From Mantamonas sphyraenae STR306 (Eukaryota; Protista; CRuMs), in NCBI GenBank assembly GCA_026936335.1, contig JAPMXV010000046.1:1-64000 (forward strand): a stretch of DNA of 64,000 bases, in the 5' to 3' direction. Position numbers and translations under genes: made by a program. This document shows, piece after piece, positions 13,465 to 21,783 of this stretch (its first letter is position 1; each line of letters starts with the position of its first letter). Below the pieces are notes generated by a model. It was given only the letters and a program-made list of their open reading frames with translations, had not been told where the DNA came from and did not search any database.

Positions 13465-16400
13465 ATGAGAAGAGGATTCGTCACAGCCGTGCTAGCTGTG
13501 ATGCTCGTGGTTGCTGCCGCAACCAACATCGATCTGGACGATACGTTTGGAAAGACCAACCTGTTTGACAACGACAAGGTGCTCACGCAGCAGCAGCTGC
13601 GTGAAGTGTTCAAGACACCCGAGGTCATCGCTGACCGAGAGGAGGTCGTGCACATGAAGGAGGAGGAGGTGTCTGAGGACGACTTCTTCCAGGAGGCGCG
13701 TGACCCGTCGATGGACCTCGAGGGCAAGACCGCCATTACGCCGACGGGCGAGCTCACGGATGCAGAGAAATCTGCAATTGGCGAGCCCGACGAGCACGCG
13801 ACCGAGTTTGGCAAGGGCTACCATGTCAAGACTTACCTGCGTGGCGACGTCAAGGTGCACCCGAAGTTTGTGGCCATCGCTGATGAGCACCACAAGGAGT
13901 TCGTCATGGACAAGGCCCCGACCAACGACATCAAGGACGACGATCCCATCAACCTGATGCAGAAGCATGCCGGCCGACTGTTTGAGCGCATGCAAGATCA
14001 GGTCAAGGACGCCGCTGTCGGTGAGACCGTGCACATGGAGCACGAGGACCTCGTGGACGACCAGGACGTGAACCCGCACCTCATTTCTGGAAAAGGGTGG
14101 GACGACGATACCCAGAACAACCCGAACAACTTCCAGCGCGAGGGCAGCGAAGAGGGTAAGTGCTCTGCCAGCCCGTTTTCCCCCTCTGTGACGGCGACGC
14201 GCGTGTGTTTGCGTTTTTTCCGCGCCCCTGCAATTTTTCCCTCCCAACCTCTGGCCGCTTGAACCGCGCCACCGCGGCGCTGGATGACGCCAGCCTCCAT
14301 CGAATGGGTCTGTGCAGTGCTCCCAAGCATGTGTGTGCCTACTGTCATGGTTTGCATGTGTCTGCATGATCCCCTATGCCTGCTTCTCCGGGAAACCTTC
14401 CAATTCCGCCGACGTGCTTCGACAATCTTCTCAGCATGTCGTGGCCCCGTTTCAATCTGAGGGATGCTCGTGTGCCGTTGATTCCGGCTGGCAAGTCTTT
14501 AGCACGCCTTCCGACGTGCATTGGACACGGCCGCGAGCTGACTGGCCCTCTGTATGACTGCCTGGTGTCCAAAAACGACACGGCGCGATTCTCCGTTGGC
14601 CTCCCTTTTTTTCTCCAGCTTGTTCGCGGCCCCGTTTCAATCTGAGCGATGCTCGTGTGCCCTCGAGACCGGCTGGCAAGTCTTGAGCACGCCTTCCGGT
14701 GTGCATTGGACACGGCCGCGAGCTGGCTGGCCCTCTGTATGCCTGCCTAGTGTCCAAAACACGTCCCGGTGCGATTCTCCATCCAAGCGTTTTCTTTGTC
14801 GACGCTCCCCTTCCGTCCTTCCTTCCCAACGGCTAACACCCGATGGTCCTCACTGAACGTGTGTTGATACTGCGCAGCTGGAGCCGGTGCCTTCCTGGCG
14901 TCGCGCCACCTCGTCGAGAAGTACAACCTGGAGGCGGGTTCTTACTTTGCCATCCACACGGGTCTGTACAAGGTGCTGCACGTCAAGACCGACACGCTGG
15001 ACGCCATGGTGCGTCTGCACTGTCGACGTGCGGGTCTGGCCGAGGTGATTGAGAACGGTGAGGTGCGCACTGTGGTGCAGGGCACGCCGTCGATGGTGCA
15101 GGATTCCGAGACCGGCGAGGTCGAGGATCTGCGCACCCATGCCACCATGGCCAAGGACAAGGAGCTTGTGCAGCAGATGTACACACGCCTGCGTGCCACG
15201 CACCAGGCCCACCTGGACGAGGAGCTCATCGAGGAGCGCCTGGCGACTCTGGACAAGAAGCTGTGGAAGGAGGTTTCCAACGGCATGCCCAAGTCCATGA
15301 TGACCGCCGAGATGATCCCTCAGCTGCGCGACGCCACCGAGGAGCTCAGCAAGGACATGAAGGACAGCGTGCGCCAACGCTTTGTCACGGCTGCCCACGA
15401 GCACGTCATGCAGGCGGCTCAGGAGCAGGAGTACGACAACATCCCCGACTCTGACGTCGAGGACGAGTACGCCGACGACGCGCCTGTCGCCGACACTCCC
15501 GAGACCGAGACCGATGAGTTTGCACAGGACAACATGGAGGACGTCGAGGACGAAGACGAAGACTCGGAGCAGCTGCCCCAAGACTCGCTGGAGGACGACG
15601 TCGAAGACGATGACGACGAGGAGATGGAGGACGTGCACGACACCGAGCGCAACCGCTGGGGCCGTGTGGGTCGATTCTTCCGCCGTGTGGGCCGCGGTAT
15701 CAAGCGTGGCTTCCGTCGCATTGGCCGCGGCATCAAGCGCGGCTTCCGCCGTGTCGGACGTGCCCTGAAGCGCGGCTGGCGCGCTGTCAAGCGCTTTGGC
15801 CGTTCCATCGCGCGCGCGGTCAAGCGTTTTGCCGCCAAGGTGTGGCGTGCGTTCAAGAAGATTGCTCGCGGCTTTGTTTCGTTCCTGAAGAAGGTAGGCC
15901 GTGTGCTCGCCAAGATTGGCAAGGCCATCGTGGCTGTCGTCAAGAAGCTGGGCAAGATTGTTGTCTTCCTGGCCAAGCTGCTCACCGGCACCATTGATGT
16001 GGACTACACCAAGGGTGTGCGCGCTGGCAAGCGCATCGGCGAGAAGGACCTGTTCAAGAAGCGCAAGGGCAACCTTGCGGTGCTGTTGCGCCTCGTGCAC
16101 GCCACTGCCACGTTCCACCCGCGCTTCGAGTTTGCGCTCAACGTGAAGCACTTCAAGCTGAAGAAGTTCAAGACGGTGCTTGCGGGTGACCTGAAGCTGG
16201 GCATGGAGCTGCTCATCCAGCTCTCGCTGCAGTACCAGAAGACCAAGGACAAGCAGCTGCTGAGCTACCGTGTGGCCAGCATCAAGTTCATGGCCGGTCC
16301 CGTGCCGGTGTGGATCAGCGTGCGCTTCATCCTGAAGGCCGGTGTGACCGTGAACATCACCGCCGGTATCGAGACCCGCTTCGGCGGCAGCGTGGCCACT

Positions 16401-19400
16401 GGCATTTCGCTGGGTCTGGTGTACGACGGCCGCTGGCGTGGTATCTTTAAGCGCTACTTCAAGAAGGAGCTCAAGGGCCCCAAGGGCCTGAAGCCGTGCG
16501 GTGGCATCACTGTGGAGGTGTTTATGACGCCCAAGCTTGCGTTCCTGCTGTACGACGTGGCTGGTCCCACGTTCGCTCTGGAGCCGTACCTGCAGCTGAA
16601 CTTCCACCCGAAGGGTGTGCAGCACTGTGTGCAGGTCGATGCCGACGAGAAGAAGAAGGACAACAAGAAGAAGGGTACCCGCGTGCGCGATGGCACCCCG
16701 ACTCTGATGCACTTTGACGAGGCCGGCAACGGCGTTGTCCTGGATGCCGACAGCAACGCCGACAAGGCTATCAACATCAAGTGGGAGCTGCGTCTGGGTC
16801 TGCGTGGTAAGGTTGGTGTCCTTGTGCAGCTGCTGGGCAAGGAGCTCGTCAGCTACGAGAAGGATGTCTTTGACAAGAGCAAGGTCGTCGCCACGGGCTT
16901 CTTCAAGATTGGCCGCGACGTGCAAGACGACGAGGAGGTCAGCGAGGACGAGGACCTGCTGGAGACGCAGGCTCTGGTCGCCGACTGGGACGAGCAGGAC
17001 AGCCTGCTCAACGTCGCCAACAACCAAGAGAGCGACAGCGAGAGCGAAGAGGAGCTCGAGGACTCCGACTCGGAGTCCGACTCGGCCTCTGACATTGAGG
17101 ACGATGACGAGTCTGCAGGTGAGTACGACGAGCTGAGCAGTGTCGACTCTCCTGTCGCCTCTGCCTCAGAGAACGTGGCCGACAAGGACATGTTCATCCG
17201 CAGGATCCGCCGCGCCGTCCGCCGTGTGTCGAGGAGAATCCGTCGCGCCGTGCGTCGTGTGCGTCGCCTCCGCGTCCGCCGTGTGGTTCGCCGCGCTCGC
17301 CGCTTTGTGCGCCGTGCCGTCCGCCGTGTGCGTCGCGTCCGCGTGCGCCGTGTGGTTCGCCGCGCTCGCCGCTTTGTGCGCCGTGCTGTCCGCCGTGTGC
17401 GTCGCGTCCGCGTCCGCCGTGTGGTTCGCCGCGCTCGCCGCTTTGTGCGTCGCGCCGTCCGCCGTGTGCGTCGCGTCCGCGTCCGCCGTGTGGTTCGCCG
17501 CGCTCGCCGCTTTGTGCGCCGCGCTGTCCGCCGCGTGCGTCGCGTCCGCGTCCGCCGTGTGGTTCGCCGCGCTCGCCGCTTTGTGCGCCGTGCTGTCCGC
17601 CGTGTGCGTCGCCGTGTGCGTCGCCGCACCACTCGCCGTCGCCGCAGCAGCCACAAGAAGTTGTCGTCCGCCGAGAAGCGCAAGGGTCGCCGTGAGATCC
17701 AGAAGCTGCTCCGCAGGAAGGAGGCCAGGAAGATCCGTGCTACTGCGGACAAGGCCCGTCAGGCTCGTGCCGATGCCAAGAAGACCAGCGCCGACCTGAA
17801 GAAGGTGACGCACATCAGCGCCTCCAAGCGCCGTGAGGCCGAAACTGCCTGCCGTAACACCATGAAGACGTCCCAGAAGGCTCTCAACAAGGAGTTTGAG
17901 CTCGACGCAAAGATCAAGCAGCTCGCCAGGAAGTATTCTCTGCGCGCCTCGGACTTTATCCGCAAGCGCAAGGCTGTTGTCCGCCGCCGCCGTGTGGTTC
18001 ACCGTCGCCGCCCGATCCGTCGTGTGCGCCGTGCCATCCGCCGTGTCGTCCGCCGTCGTCGCCCGGTCCGTCGTGTGCGCCGTGCTATCCGCCGTGTTGT
18101 GCGTCGTGTCGTCCGTCGTCGTCGCTTCGTCCGCCGTCGTCGCCCGATCCGTCGTGTGCGCCGTGCTATCCGCCGTGTTGTGCGTCGTGTCCGTCGCCGC
18201 ACCTGCTTCAGGAACATCAGGCGCTGCTTCCGCATCCGCAACCGCCGCCTCTGTAGGAACGTGCGTGTGCGCACTGCCTGCCGCCGTGGCGTGCGCCGTG
18301 TCGTCCGTCGCCGTCGCCCGATCCGTCGTGTGGGCCGTGCTATCCGCCGTGCCATCCGCCGTGTCGTCCGTCGCCGTCGCCCGGTCCGTCGTGTGGGCCG
18401 TGCTATCCGCCGTGCCATCCGCCGTGTCGTCCGTCGTCGTCGCCCGGTCCGTCGTGTGCGCCGTGCTATCCGCCGTGTTGTGCGTCGTGTCCGTCGCCGC
18501 ACCTGCTTCAGGAACATCAGGCGCTGCTTCCGCATCCGCAACCGCCGCCTCTGTAGGAACGTGCGTGTGCGCACTGCCTGCCGCCGTGGCGTGCGCCGTG
18601 TCGTCCGCCGCCGTCGCCCGATCCGTCGTGTGGGCCGTGCTATCCGCCGTGCCATCCGCCGTGTCGTCCGTCGTCGTCGCCCGATCCGCCGCCGTGGTGG
18701 TTTCTTCCGCAAGATCCGCAAGGCAGGCCGCCGCGCAGGCCGTCGTGTCCGCAAGGCGATCCGCCGCTTCCGTGGCCGCCGCCGACGCCGCCGTGGTGGT
18801 TTCTTCCGCAAGATCCGCAAGGCTGGCCGCCGCTTCCGTGGCCGCCGCCGACGCCGCCGTGGTGGTTTCTTCCGCAAGATCCGCAAGGCTGGCCGCCGTG
18901 TCCGCAAGGCGATCCGCCGCTTCCGTGGCCGCCGCCGACGCCGCCGTGGTGGTTTCTTCCGCAAGATCCGCAAGGCAGGCCGCCGCGCTGGCCGTCGTGT
19001 CCGCAAGGCGATCCGCCGCTTCCGTGGCCGCCGCCGACGCCGCCGTGGTGGTCGCAAGACCCGTCGCCGCCGCTTCTCGGTAGGTCGCACCCTCAAGGCC
19101 ATCGGTCGCATGGTGAAGCGCCTGCACCGCAAGCGCTTCGCCGCTCTGCACCGCGCCATCAAGGCTGTCAGTGCTCAGGAGCGCGCTCGCATCAGCAAGA
19201 TCCGTAAGCGCCTGCGCCGCCGCGCTAGCCAGCTCAAGCGCAAGATGTGCCTCAGGACCACCCGCAAGTGCCGCATGGTCCGCTTTGGCCGTGGCAAGCG
19301 CCGCATCTGCTCCATCAAGAAGCAGCGTGTGCCCTGCAAGTCCCTCCGCCGCCGTGCACGCCGCTTCCGTCGTCTGGCCCGCCGTGGCCGTCGCCACCCG

Positions 19401-19724
19401 CGCCGCTTCCTGCGTCGTATCCGCAAGGTGATCCGCCGCAAGACCTTCAGGCGCAACTTTGCCCGCACCGCCAGGAGACTCAAGCGCGCCCTGCGCTTCC
19501 GTCGCCGCCGCCGTCGCCACCCGCGCCGTGCTGCCAAGAAGGTGCGTCGCATCCTCCGTCGCTCTGTCGGCCGCCGCGCTCTGCGCCGCAAGGTCGTCCT
19601 GAGCCGTCGTGGCCGTTGCCCGGCGATCCTCCGCAAGACCCGCGCTAAGCTCGTCGCTCTGCGTCGTCTTGTTGCACGCCTGCGTGCATCCCTGCGCAAG
19701 CGCAACGCTCGCCGCCGCTTCTAA
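13465..19724 (+). CDS. Large secreted precursor (~1850 aa): signal peptide, acidic regions, cationic amphipathic helix, beta-rich domain, ~840-aa Arg-rich repetitive C-terminus
   Basis: Exon 1 13465-14155 (MRRGFVTAVLAVMLVVAAA), intron GTAAGT...GCAG 14156-14877, exon 2 14878-19724 in frame with ORF 14973-19724. Strong C/G third-position bias. Confidence 0.88.
14443..14780. repeat. Two diverged direct copies (~150 bp, ~185-bp period) of a hairpin-rich element inside the intron
   Basis: GGCCCCGTTTCAATCTGAG...GCGATTCTCC at ~14443-14595 and ~14628-14780. Confidence 0.9.
17245..17615 (+). repeat. 69-bp coding tandem repeat x5 (RRAVRRVRRVRVRRVVRRARRFV)
   Basis: GTGGTTCGCCGCGCTCGC recurs at 17283, 17352, 17421, 17490 and 17559. 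Confidence 0.95.
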
Positions 19725-19831: not shown

Positions 19832-20550
19832 ATGCGCACCTCTGTGTCCATTGCCGTCACCCTCTGCATGCTCGTGGTCCTTGCTGCGGCCACCTGCCCG
19901 ACCCCGCCCACTGTCCAGGACGCCAATCTCGCCGACTTTTTCAGTGGCCGCTGGTACGAGCTTGCCAACGCCATTGACAGCAGGCGAACCATCGAAAGTG
20001 GTATGTGGCCCACCCGGAGCTTTTTCCGAATCAGATCCAAATTTTGCGAACGGCGACTTTTGCTCACCCCGCCCCCCCTTTCCCCATCCCACCCGTCGCG
20101 CCCCTTTCCTAAACCCCCCCACCCCCACCAGATCTCGTGTGCTCCACCGCAAACTACACCCTCGATGCCTCCACAGGCCTCGTCCGCATTCTCAACGAAG
20201 GCCGTGTCGGCAGTGTCAACGGGACCTACAAGCGTGCCCACCTCAAGGGCAAGCAGGTTGCCCCAGGCAAGTTTGAGGTCTTTACAATCCCCGAGATCAC
20301 CAGCCCGCTCTGGCTCCTCCAGCTCTATGGCGAGGCCAGCAATGGCTACGACGCTGCCGTCGTCTACGCCTGCATCGACCCGCTCGGTCTGCTCCAGTAC
20401 GAAAACATGTGGGTGCTCAGCCGTACCACCTCCCTCCCTTCCAACCTCTCCTTCGACGAGATCTACGCCGCCGCCGCAAAGATGGGCATCGACGTCGACC
20501 ACCTCCAGATGAAGCCCGAGGTCCAGGGTCCCGACTGCGACTACCAGTGA
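19832..20550 (+). CDS. Secreted lipocalin (apolipoprotein D/Blc-like)
   Basis: Signal peptide, F-SGRWYE SCR1 motif, C..ANY, WVLSR SCR3. Intron 20001-20131 joins the frames. Confidence 0.9.
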
Positions 20551-20568: not shown

Positions 20569-21429
20569 TCACTTTCCTCCCCCACACACCAGACACCCTT
20601 CCTTCACCTCGCCCACCCACGAGTCCATGCTAAAGTTCAGCATGTAGAAAAACACCCGCGACGGAATCTCGTCGCTCGCCCCCATCACGTACTCGTTCAT
20701 GATTGCGCTCATCAGATGCGCACACATTGCACAGCTGTACACACAGCTGCCGCCTTCCCGCCCCATGTCCTCAATCTGCAGATCACGAGGCAAAAAGTCC
20801 AGCTTTTCCAGCTCCATGATCTTCCCTTGGCTCATCTTGCTCATCACCTCCTCCTCCAACGTGTCCGTCTGGCACCCAAAGCACGGTCCCTCATTCGGCT
20901 TCTGGAACAGCACTCCGCACATGTGTCCCGAAGACGGCTCCGTGCCTCCGTCCACCAACGGCACCCCGAGCTCCCGCGCCAGCAGCGCCAGCGCCCCGGT
21001 AAAGTGATCACTAAAGTCAATCGAGTTGAAGATGCACGTCACGTCCTCCTTGGCCAGCCCAACCAGCCGCTGCCACTCCTCGCACGCGTTGCTCACCTCC
21101 ACGTCCACAATCTCCGTCTGCAGGTTGTGCAGTGACTCCAGCGTCTCGATTGCACTCTTCACCTTGCTCTTCCCAATCATCGACTTGTTGTACAGAATCT
21201 GCCGGTTCAGGTTGTGGTCGTCCACCACGTCCATGTCGATCAAGTAGATCTTTTTGTATCCCAGCCGGCAGCAGTTCTGCGCAATCGTCGTACCCAGTCC
21301 TCCCACCCCAAAGATCATCGCCACCTGTTTCTCCACCGCCTCCTTGTTCCACACGCTCGTATTGTTCTGTCGCTTGAAAAAATCAAACCCAACGCCCTCC
21401 GTCCCTTCTTGCTGCTGCTCAACGCTCAT
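20569..21429 (-). CDS. ThiF/MoeB/E1-like adenylating enzyme
   Basis: GVGGLG, DMDVVDDHNLNRQ, and CFGC/CLVC Zn pairs. Likely start MSVEQQ at 21429. Confidence 0.9.
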   Translation of the reverse strand: MSVEQQQEGTEGVGFDFFKRQNNTSVWNKEAVEKQVAMIFGVGGLGTTIAQNCCRLGYKKIYLIDMDVVDDHNLNRQILYNKSMIGKSKVKSAIETLESLHNLQTEIVDVEVSNACEEWQRLVGLAKEDVTCIFNSIDFSDHFTGALALLARELGVPLVDGGTEPSSGHMCGVLFQKPNEGPCFGCQTDTLEEEVMSKMSQGKIMELEKLDFLPRDLQIEDMGREGGSCVYSCAMCAHLMSAIMNEYVMGASDEIPSRVFFYMLNFSMDSWVGEVKEGCLVCGGGK

Positions 21430-21783
21430 GCTGCGCACAACCGATCCACACCCAAAACACAACCCAGCCCCGGCCAGCAATAAAGGAAAACACACCCCCA
21501 AAACACACGTGTCAGTTCCCAACCCGCACTTCTTCCACGCCATTTCCCCAAACTTCCCTCTCTCACCCCGCCGTGCTCGCAAACCCACCCCACCCACTGC
21601 CCACCTTCAAACCCCCATTCCTCTCCACAGCCCCCATCCACCCTTGCCTCACCCCCGCTCCCCCAAGCCCCTCTCTCCACCACGCCCCACGTCACCACTC
21701 CCTTCTCTCTCCTTCGCGCACCTTCTTTGCTTGCTGTAACCGTGGCTCCTCCAGCGCACCCACTCCATCCACGCCCAACAGCC

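Follow-up and report, generated by a model that had tools for sequence, protein, structure and literature searches.

Locus and gene model

The gene studied here lies in a window of 64,000 nucleotides from the deep-branching protist Mantamonas sphyraenae STR306 (positions 1 to 64,000 of contig JAPMXV010000046.1, assembly GCA_026936335.1; "the window" always means this whole stretch), and it encodes a giant protein of 1,845 residues in which acidic regions alternate with strongly basic ones. The window opens with about 28 CCCTAA telomere repeats at 1-170, one of which is imperfect (CCTACCCTAA at ~61), and the gene is therefore situated about 13 kb from the chromosome end. The published FALCON assembly of this species amounts to 25.06 Mb in 78 contigs, with 59.19% guanine plus cytosine and TTAGGG telomeres (PMC10492846); the genome that we searched for paralogs had 25,061,354 bases in 78 contigs. 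As judged from the similarities described below, the gene represents the extreme case within a family of giant modular proteins that is specific to Mantamonas, and neither the family nor its architecture is described in the texts and libraries that we searched. It should be mentioned that an acidic region placed ahead of a cationic, membrane-active part is, as a general idea, already known.

The gene consists of two exons (13465-14155 and 14878-19724), whose joined frame is in phase and closes with a stop codon at 19722-19724; the intron has phase 1. The start codon (ATG at 13465) opens a signal-like N-terminus with a hydrophobic core of 15 residues and with Ala-Ala-Ala ahead of the likely cut. 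The end of exon 1 abuts GTAAGT, and an AG at 14876-14877 stands directly 5' of exon 2. A junction at 14155^14878 had been proposed in a first-pass annotation made from the sequence alone, and the relatives of the gene bear it out. In its closest paralog, L009 (contig C41), an upstream exon with a signal peptide of its own is 45% identical to exon 1 over 229 amino acids; its donor is found at the same position before GTAAGT, and the frame resumes after CAG in the same phase. In another paralog, L010, the exon-1-like and exon-2-like parts are 9 residues apart within a single open reading frame (ORF). The M. plastica transcript P0002, whose protein itself opens with a signal peptide, shares 35% identity with exon 1 over its residues 1-209, and in this messenger RNA the match to exon 1 stops at residue 209 and that to exon 2 starts at residue 211. 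The identical intron site in L009 and the contiguity of both parts in L010 and P0002 indicate that exon 1 is joined to exon 2. All searches, folds and alignments were made on the separate exons, and the joined model was used for numbering and composition.

The same annotation had listed an acidic N-terminal region ending in a D/E tract, a cationic helix of ~110 amino acids, a beta-rich domain, a second acidic tract and an Arg-rich tail, and we found all of these features as described and with correct coordinates when sequence, charge profile and translation were inspected (Table 1). In the joined model the net charge is -72 for residues 1-487, which include the D/E tract at 15420-15647, +63 for residues 488-915 (helix and beta domain), -33 for residues 916-1000 (16925-17190) and +410 for residues 1001-1845 (the tail), which results in +368 for the whole protein. 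Arg makes up 43.7% of the 845 tail residues, followed by Val (11.6%) and Ala (8.5%), and Asp and Glu together account for 1.6%. The second acidic tract is rich in Ser-x-Glu/Asp. The hydrophobic moment of the cationic helix peaks at 100 degrees, where it reaches 0.79 versus 0.30 +/- 0.04 in shuffled sequences, and a 33-nt (11-residue) tandem period was detected within the helix by Tandem Repeats Finder (TRF).

The protein family, its tails and the surroundings of the gene

A homology search with the non-repetitive parts, which the first-pass annotation had suggested, revealed two things absent from it, namely a large paralogous family and prokaryotic relatives of the beta domain. The segment bearing this domain (15972-16931) recovered about 18 additional places in the genome, 17 of them distinct at E<=1e-25, and the module is common to at least 17 loci. 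The open frames that hold these matches range from 922 to 2,788 residues, and a second copy is present in two of the proteins. An alignment of 13 modules revealed a shared order: a small N-domain, a helical linker, an acidic tract ending in Val-x-Asp, an amphipathic helix and the beta domain. The acidic tract is present in 11 of them, L012 and L013 being almost wholly gapped there. The helix extends over 90-175 residues with an 11-residue period, and it is amphipathic in all paralogs, including those in which it is barely cationic. Signal peptides were also found in L009, L020 and L025, and in P0002 and P0005 of M. plastica, a species in which five transcript clusters carry the module. In the tree, several M. 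sphyraenae loci pair with M. plastica transcripts (for instance L015 with P0005, at 100/99), so that diversification of the family predates the split between the two species. The window gene is sister to L009 (99/99), with P0002 next to both.

The transition from acid to base turned out to follow a common pattern. An unbiased scan for sharp charge switches found 20 of them, distributed over 14 members of the family from both species, and all but one (19/20) share Glu/Gln, Val, any residue and Asp, then a bulky pair within a few residues, and Arg-Arg. The bulky pair is aromatic in 16 of these 19 cases (Phe-Trp, Met-Trp, Met-Phe, Trp-Phe or Phe-Phe). The window gene conforms to the pattern at both of its junctions. 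The same type of junction opens the Arg/Val repeats of L015, L025, P0160 and P0005, the last two of which demonstrate that M. plastica transcribes Arg/Val tails located behind an acidic tract. L025 (C54:156500-166400, minus strand, ~160.6-162.3 kb) is a small secreted-type protein with a signal peptide and two cassettes, and without the beta domain. In each cassette an acidic tract leads through Asp-Met-Trp into ten consecutive Arg; Arg/Val repeats extend the second of these runs, after which the protein ends in a short, non-repetitive, Cys-containing region. The exact DNA pattern for Asp-Met-Trp-(Gly)-Arg-Arg has only four matches in the genome, three of them already known, and so the junction is a degenerate motif without a fixed wording. 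As judged from these comparisons, the Arg-rich tail is a conserved and transcribed kind of element that has grown to an enormous size in the window gene. The non-repetitive basic region in the middle of the tail likewise has counterparts after the Arg/Val repeats of L015 and P0005.

Because the DNA of the tail is repetitive, its alternative frames are long too, and the open frame by itself therefore proves little. We thus give the evidence on coding status separately. All tandem-repeat periods found by TRF are multiples of 3 (12, 18, 21, 33, 51, 63, 66, 69, 81, 87 and 300 nt). Arg codons in the tail are CGC or CGT (349) and never CGG, and Lys is encoded by AAG only, as in the conserved upstream part of the gene. 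Variable sites among the five 69-nt copies are synonymous in 5 cases versus 1 non-synonymous, and codon differences between the two 300-nt copies are 6 synonymous versus 4 non-synonymous in frame, compared with 3/7 and 0/10 in the other frames. Taken together, these signatures indicate that the tail is coding and not a mere open low-complexity frame. Moreover, codon usage and the synonymous bias between copies suggest that selection acts on the tail, which counts in favor of the functional reading that we prefer below.

One might still argue that only the N-terminal module is functional, and that the Arg tail is a recent, weakly selected, subtelomeric and perhaps decaying product of neutral repeat expansion. 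On one hand, the gene is only 13 kb from the telomere, the repeat copies are 87-96% identical and therefore young, the closest paralog L009 has no Arg/Val repeats, and tail types vary widely between paralogs. On the other hand, the frame is intact over 2.5 kb, the periods all preserve it, codon usage looks optimal and the copies differ preferentially at synonymous sites. Furthermore, Arg/Val tails follow the same junction in two lineages of the family and in both species, with transcription in M. plastica. We thus regard neutral expansion as quite improbable.

Several further observations on the paralogs were made. Their tails are diverse yet always basic, being His/Arg-rich, Lys-rich or Cys/Trp-rich; in L018 (contig C24), for example, ORF residues ~1200-1880 form a tail of ~700 residues with helical repeats in which His and Arg are very abundant. 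L015 (C69, ORF residues ~820-831) and P0005 (residues ~1163-1181) share a Cys-Gly cluster, in which Cys alternates with Gly/Arg; it is kept in both species and is located between a Lys-rich helical region and the acidic tract. L016 (C47:25800-35700) and L017 (C49:371800-381700) are nearly identical over >2,100 residues, which points to either a recent segmental duplication or uncollapsed haplotypes. L026 (C12:14000-23900, minus strand) contains two adjoining ORFs of another kind, both following a Gly-zipper-like segment in an open frame without a signal peptide. The first has 27% Arg and repeats of Pro-Thr-Arg-Arg-Val-Arg-Arg-Val-Arg-Thr-Tyr, and the second is Ser/Arg-rich. The M. plastica Trinity isoforms P0002, P0159 and P0160 differ only in their Arg-rich tails (982, 1044 and 1121 residues), which run into apparently frame-shifted text; as short-read assembly collapses Arg-tail repeats, the assembled isoforms need not show the true tail length in M. 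plastica. Finally, the 90% cluster of P0002 includes fragments of 36-50 residues of a Vibrio 'D-serine dehydratase', which looks like a database clustering artefact.

Coordinates of all features of the gene are collected in Table 1.

Table 1. Features of the window gene (positions in the window; pLDDT, predicted local distance difference test).
Feature	Position	Strand	Basis
Exon 1: signal peptide (~13465-13521) and acidic N-terminal region kept in the family	13465..14155	+	ORF, sequence, paralog/ortholog identity
Intron, phase 1, GTAAGT...CAG	14156..14877	+	sequence, TRF, donor shared with paralog L009
Exon 2, open to the stop	14878..19724	+	stop-free translation
Small N-domain with conserved Cys-x-x-Ala-Gly-Leu and Glu-Thr-Gly-Glu-Val motifs	14880..15134	+	kept in 13 modules
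Helical linker	15135..15419	+	predicted helices 85-135 and 145-186, pLDDT 60-73
Acidic tract 1	15420..15647	+	net -37 over model residues 401-480
Junction 1: Val-x-Asp, then Trp-Gly-Arg	15633..15665	+	Asp (D254 in alignment) invariant in 13 modules; switch-point list
Cationic amphipathic helix, ~113 residues, 11-residue period	15648..15989	+	net +39; moment, 33-nt repeats; low-pLDDT single helix
All-beta domain (DUF7223-like), very long strands	15990..16922	+	model pLDDT 86.6
Acidic/Ser-rich tract 2	16926..17186	+	net -33; aligns with P0002 acidic tract
Junction 2: Asp-Met-Phe, then Ile-Arg-Arg	17184..17204	+	switch-point list
Arg/Val 23-residue repeats, 69-nt units	17193..17621	+	TRF 5.2 copies, 95% matches; moment 0.80 at 94 degrees
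Non-repetitive basic helical 'mid' region	17622..17972	+	44-46% identical to L009 tail
Arg-rich repeats with two 4-Cys modules, 300-nt units	17973..18701	+	TRF; Cys spacing
Gly-Gly-Phe-Phe-Arg-Lys repeats with Arg runs	18702..19061	+	TRF periods 66 and 87 nt; four copies
Basic C-terminal region, third 4-Cys group	19062..19721	+	translation; Cys positions

Within the intron, TRF detected a tandem duplication at 14428-14780, with 1.9 copies of a 185-nt unit that are 88-89% identical; no other copy of this unit was found in the genome, and it matched no Rfam family. About 108 nt past the stop codon, a neighboring gene of two or more exons (19832-20550, plus strand) begins, which had been annotated as a secreted lipocalin. 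Its N-terminus is indeed signal-like, but only a likeness to lipocalins can be stated, as its second exon reaches 21.7 bits against Lipocalin_2, just under the Pfam cut-off of 24. It is followed on the minus strand by a gene of the ThiF family (E1-like) at 20569-21597 (Pfam E 1e-27).

The beta domain and the amphipathic helix

A profile built from 15 Mantamonas copies of the beta domain matched 3,006 proteins at E<=1e-3, 724 of them at E<=1e-10, in a library of 1.84 billion proteins. The relatives outside Mantamonas are prokaryotic and for the most part secreted lipoproteins; among them are proteins with a lipobox, one neighborhood with type II secretion genes, and members from metagenome-assembled genomes of Latescibacterota and Euryarchaeota. 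At the C-terminus they carry FGE-sulfatase, VWA or PKD domains, and they possess neither the linker nor the acidic tract, the amphipathic helix or the basic tails. The profile of the Mantamonas N-domain weakly matches some of these relatives just upstream of the beta domain (E 1e-4 to 1e-3), which suggests that the combination of N-domain and beta domain is probably ancient; what lies between them in Mantamonas (linker, acidic tract and helix) has the appearance of an insertion. According to these profile matches, the beta domain either descends from prokaryotic secreted lipoproteins or is held in common with them.

Named families offered little help. Pfam DUF7223 (PF23865) gave weak matches in 11 of 67 relatives (best E 5.5e-7), and the two relatives with reported scores stayed under the 27-bit cut-off (23.9 and 22.5 bits). 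The window domain itself had no match to PF23865, and its tie to DUF7223 is therefore indirect. With either exon or any segment as a query, Pfam and NCBIfam returned nothing at or near cut-off, and a comparison of the profile with PDB sequences gave nothing below E 0.3. A literature search for DUF7223 returned no paper, and neither did one on arginine-rich proteins with a signal peptide in extrusomes.

The fold predicted from a 67-row alignment is the one given in Table 1 (all-beta, with very long strands, pLDDT 86.6). A Foldseek search against the PDB gave no match at E<=1e-3; the best one (E 5e-3, TM 0.08-0.17) involved only extended hairpins of pore states. A fold in common with solved beta pore-formers (MACPF/CDC, aerolysin, haemolysin or gasdermin) was not supported, as VIA gave Z 5.7-7.7 with a root-mean-square deviation (rmsd) of 11-17 A and Foldseek similarity was weak. 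A TULIP or lipid-tube fold was likewise absent from the fold matches. VIA scores of Z 8-9.5 were obtained for small eight-stranded barrels, both of membranes (OprF, PagL, NspA) and soluble (DUF3224), which is within the range of chance best hits; Z 8.4-9.6 for the autotransporter barrels BrkA, Hbp, EspP and AIDA-I concerns about half of the domain and is in the chance range too. The nearest shapes in the ESM Atlas were unnamed bacterial clusters, a fungal DUF7223 cluster and a Myxococcota 'secreted protein' cluster. A feature search of the same resource led from the beta domain to unnamed bacterial clusters only, and from exon 1 to no usable match. Prediction of a homodimer of the beta domain returned 'no answer' (score 0.00), which speaks neither for nor against one. 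The whole module (684 residues, 13-row alignment) was folded with a poor pLDDT of 54.5, and this model is therefore uninformative on the packing of helix and beta domain.

Amphipathic helices with an 11-residue period are known in apolipoproteins, perilipins, alpha-synuclein and phasins. It is conceivable that the helix and a beta barrel, as a unit in a lumen or outside the cell, bind or solubilize prey lipids in an apolipoprotein- or phasin-like manner, with the Arg tail as an accessory anchor. The helices of paralogs give sub-threshold matches to Phasin_2, PhaP and Apolipoprotein, the linker helices match the phasin PhaP structurally (Z 7.6), and the barrel core is as like small ligand-binding barrels (DUF3224, avidin-like, pigment-binding) as it is like membrane barrels. 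The persistence of amphipathicity in barely cationic paralogs would fit as well. However, every one of these matches is under the family cut-off or within chance Z, the 845-residue Arg tail is left unexplained, and the prokaryotic relatives have no such helix. Lipid handling as the principal role therefore appears doubtful to us.

Probable secretory route, proposed role and known systems

A signal peptide, and hence a secretory route, had been proposed for this protein, and the family data agree with it: signal peptides are kept in paralogs and orthologs, and the basic tails contain 4-Cys modules. The spacing C-x6-C-x8-C-x8-C is common to the tails of the window gene, L009 and P0001, which suggests disulfides and hence an oxidizing compartment. 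The fact that prokaryotic relatives of the beta domain are lipoproteins in secretion-rich neighborhoods is also counted here in favor of the reading that we prefer. The protein thus likely enters the secretory pathway, as far as sequence comparison can tell. Arginine-rich motifs that bind RNA and DNA resemble helical Arg-rich stretches, and the tail, with 44% Arg and helical Arg-rich motifs, might suggest an intracellular, protamine- or nucleolar-like binder of nucleic acids, provided that the N-terminal hydrophobic stretch is no working signal peptide. Protamines share the Arg-richness, but they are nuclear and free of signals, whereas here signal-like N-termini are kept across paralogs and species, the tails hold conserved even-numbered Cys modules, and the beta domain is common to exported prokaryotic lipoproteins. 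A nucleic-acid binder is therefore highly improbable, in agreement with the earlier view that a protamine role was unlikely.

Our preferred reading, which we put forward tentatively, is that of a secretory-pathway protein whose amphipathic helix and Arg tail may bind anionic membranes and polyanions, most plausibly on bacterial prey. In such a scenario, the protein would be delivered to a lumenal compartment (a food vacuole or a granule) or to the outside, where the helix and the tail could bind anionic membranes and polyanions, for example the envelopes of bacteria that have been eaten. The acidic tracts, which flank the cationic stretches, might serve as spacers or masks acting in cis, and the conserved junction would be the best candidate site for parting acid from base, for instance by a pepsin-type cut. 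The second cassette of the window gene would repeat this logic, as it again consists of an acidic tract and a junction, followed by 845 residues of Arg/Val repeats and 4-Cys modules.

Candidate processing enzymes are encoded in the genome, namely two loci with a proprotein-convertase P-domain, one C13 peptidase and at least five A1 aspartic proteases. This would make processing possible, and such evidence is only permissive. Pepsin-type aspartic proteases prefer bulky aromatic pairs. A dibasic convertase would shred the tail, and the aromatic pair of the junction is thus a better candidate for a cut site than the Arg runs.

Four points weigh against this membrane- and polyanion-binding role. 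A kexin-like convertase, should it meet the tail, would be expected to cut it at many Arg-Arg sites, which speaks against a release of defined peptides by ordinary dibasic processing. According to Foldseek and VIA, the beta domain has no recognizable fold of a pore-former or a lipid binder. The helices of some paralogs are weakly cationic (+5 to +8), and cationicity is therefore not the common denominator of the family. Finally, the acidic tract ahead of the tail falls far short of the tail's charge, and across modules no co-variation between the charges of acidic region and helix was seen.

The last point also bears on an earlier proposal, according to which the protein is a charge-neutralized stored precursor. 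The sign pattern is universal, as in 19 of 19 modules the acidic region is negative (net -5 to -41) and the helix positive (+5 to +43), and the first pair of the window gene nearly balances (-72 versus +63). This part of the proposal stands. However, the tail exceeds its own acidic tract twelve-fold (+410 versus -33), and compensation of charges across the 19 modules, which would result in a negative correlation, was not supported (Pearson +0.19, Spearman +0.41). Masking thus cannot be simple stoichiometric neutralization, and if the tail is neutralized in storage at all, another polyanion must be responsible. The acidic tracts may mask, space or solubilize their neighbors, and they may do so without being stoichiometric counter-ions.

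The charge layout might alternatively be that of a structural polyelectrolyte, i.e. a gliding adhesive, surface coat, cyst wall or granule matrix, in which blocks of opposite charge condense as complex coacervates, among themselves or with further polyanions, and Ser-rich tracts are possibly phosphorylated. A block-polyampholyte layout with a very large charge, an acidic tract rich in Ser-x-Glu/Asp, many giant paralogs with diverse basic tails, and in-frame expansion of tandem repeats, which is typical of structural proteins, are all consistent with this idea. On the other hand, a net charge of +368 is far from neutral, so an external polyanion would be needed, and strict amphipathic periodicity and conserved globular domains seem superfluous for a bulk material. 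In addition, the genome paper of M. sphyraenae mentions no extrusomes (PMC10492846), and in the texts that we read the organism is not known to have an extrusome, scale or wall component. We consider a structural role unlikely.

The membrane- and polyanion-binding reading may be extended to a bolder scheme, which we find rather unlikely. The cassette of acidic tract, Val-x-Asp, aromatic pair and poly-Arg amphipathic repeats could be a hitherto unknown eukaryotic way to make, store and arm very large arrays of Arg-rich helical amphipathic peptides within the secretory or endolysosomal system: the junction would be cut in the acidic food vacuole by, for example, a pepsin-type protease, the peptides would be released onto ingested bacteria, and the prokaryotic-type beta domain would dock to the membrane or insert in it. 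According to one idea, organelle-targeting peptides descend from helical amphipathic antimicrobial peptides; if the scheme is true, a lineage near the base of Amorphea would provide a living example for it.

If the more general reading holds, a bacterivorous protist of the CRuMs, a supergroup that is poorly studied, would have a large secreted polycation toolkit of its own, unrelated to saposins, defensins and perforins, and built around a beta domain otherwise known from uncultured prokaryotes and fungi. It would also mean new natural Arg-rich binders of membranes and polyanions, a candidate for a new processing or sorting motif, and a first starting point for functional work on a widespread but uncharacterized domain that is present in thousands of proteins. 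Irrespective of function, about 17 loci for giant proteins of 1,000-2,800 residues in a 25-Mb genome are of value for annotation, since low-complexity filters and short-read assemblers mangle such genes, as in the case of the collapsed M. plastica tails.

How does this architecture compare with known systems? The arrangement of a helix just N-terminal to a barrel-like beta domain resembles the translocator of autotransporters. However, the structural agreement is limited to an rmsd of 5-6 A over about half the domain with chance-range Z, there is no sequence similarity, and the window gene encodes a eukaryotic secretory protein with an amphipathic helix of 113 residues. With the helices of apolipoproteins and phasins it shares length, the 11-residue repeat and a strong moment, with paralog matches that are sub-threshold; unlike them, the window helix is far more cationic, stands behind a signal peptide and an acidic tract, and is fused to a beta domain. 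The prokaryotic lipoproteins have a homologous beta domain and a weakly similar N-domain just upstream, the fungal DUF7223 cluster being a neighbor in fold, but they carry FGE-sulfatase, VWA or PKD instead of the helix, acidic tract and basic tail.

A closer parallel in layout is found among precursors with acidic propieces. In eosinophil proMBP-1, the acidic propiece is thought to neutralize the toxic basic protein in transport and is then cleaved off (PMC11483036). Like proMBP-1 and the precursors of defensins and cathelicidins, the window gene encodes a signal peptide and an acidic region directly adjoining a strongly basic part. Charge balance is found here in the first pair only; the tail, at +410 compared with +15 in proMBP-1, is unbalanced, and modules do not co-vary. 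There is also no relation in sequence or fold to these precursors, the cassette is repeated within giant multi-domain proteins, and cleavage is only a candidate step.

The last comparison is with naegleriapore B, a multi-peptide precursor that is processed into separate peptides (PMC11542183), and with the Apl proteins of Dictyostelium. Their units are saposin-like, whereas ours would be linear Arg-rich amphipathic repeats, the long 11-residue-period helix and a beta domain unrelated to them; family-library searches found no saposin domain in the window gene or its paralogs. What these systems seem to have in common is a microbe-eating protist that makes one secretory precursor with several membrane-active units, putative ones in the case of Mantamonas.

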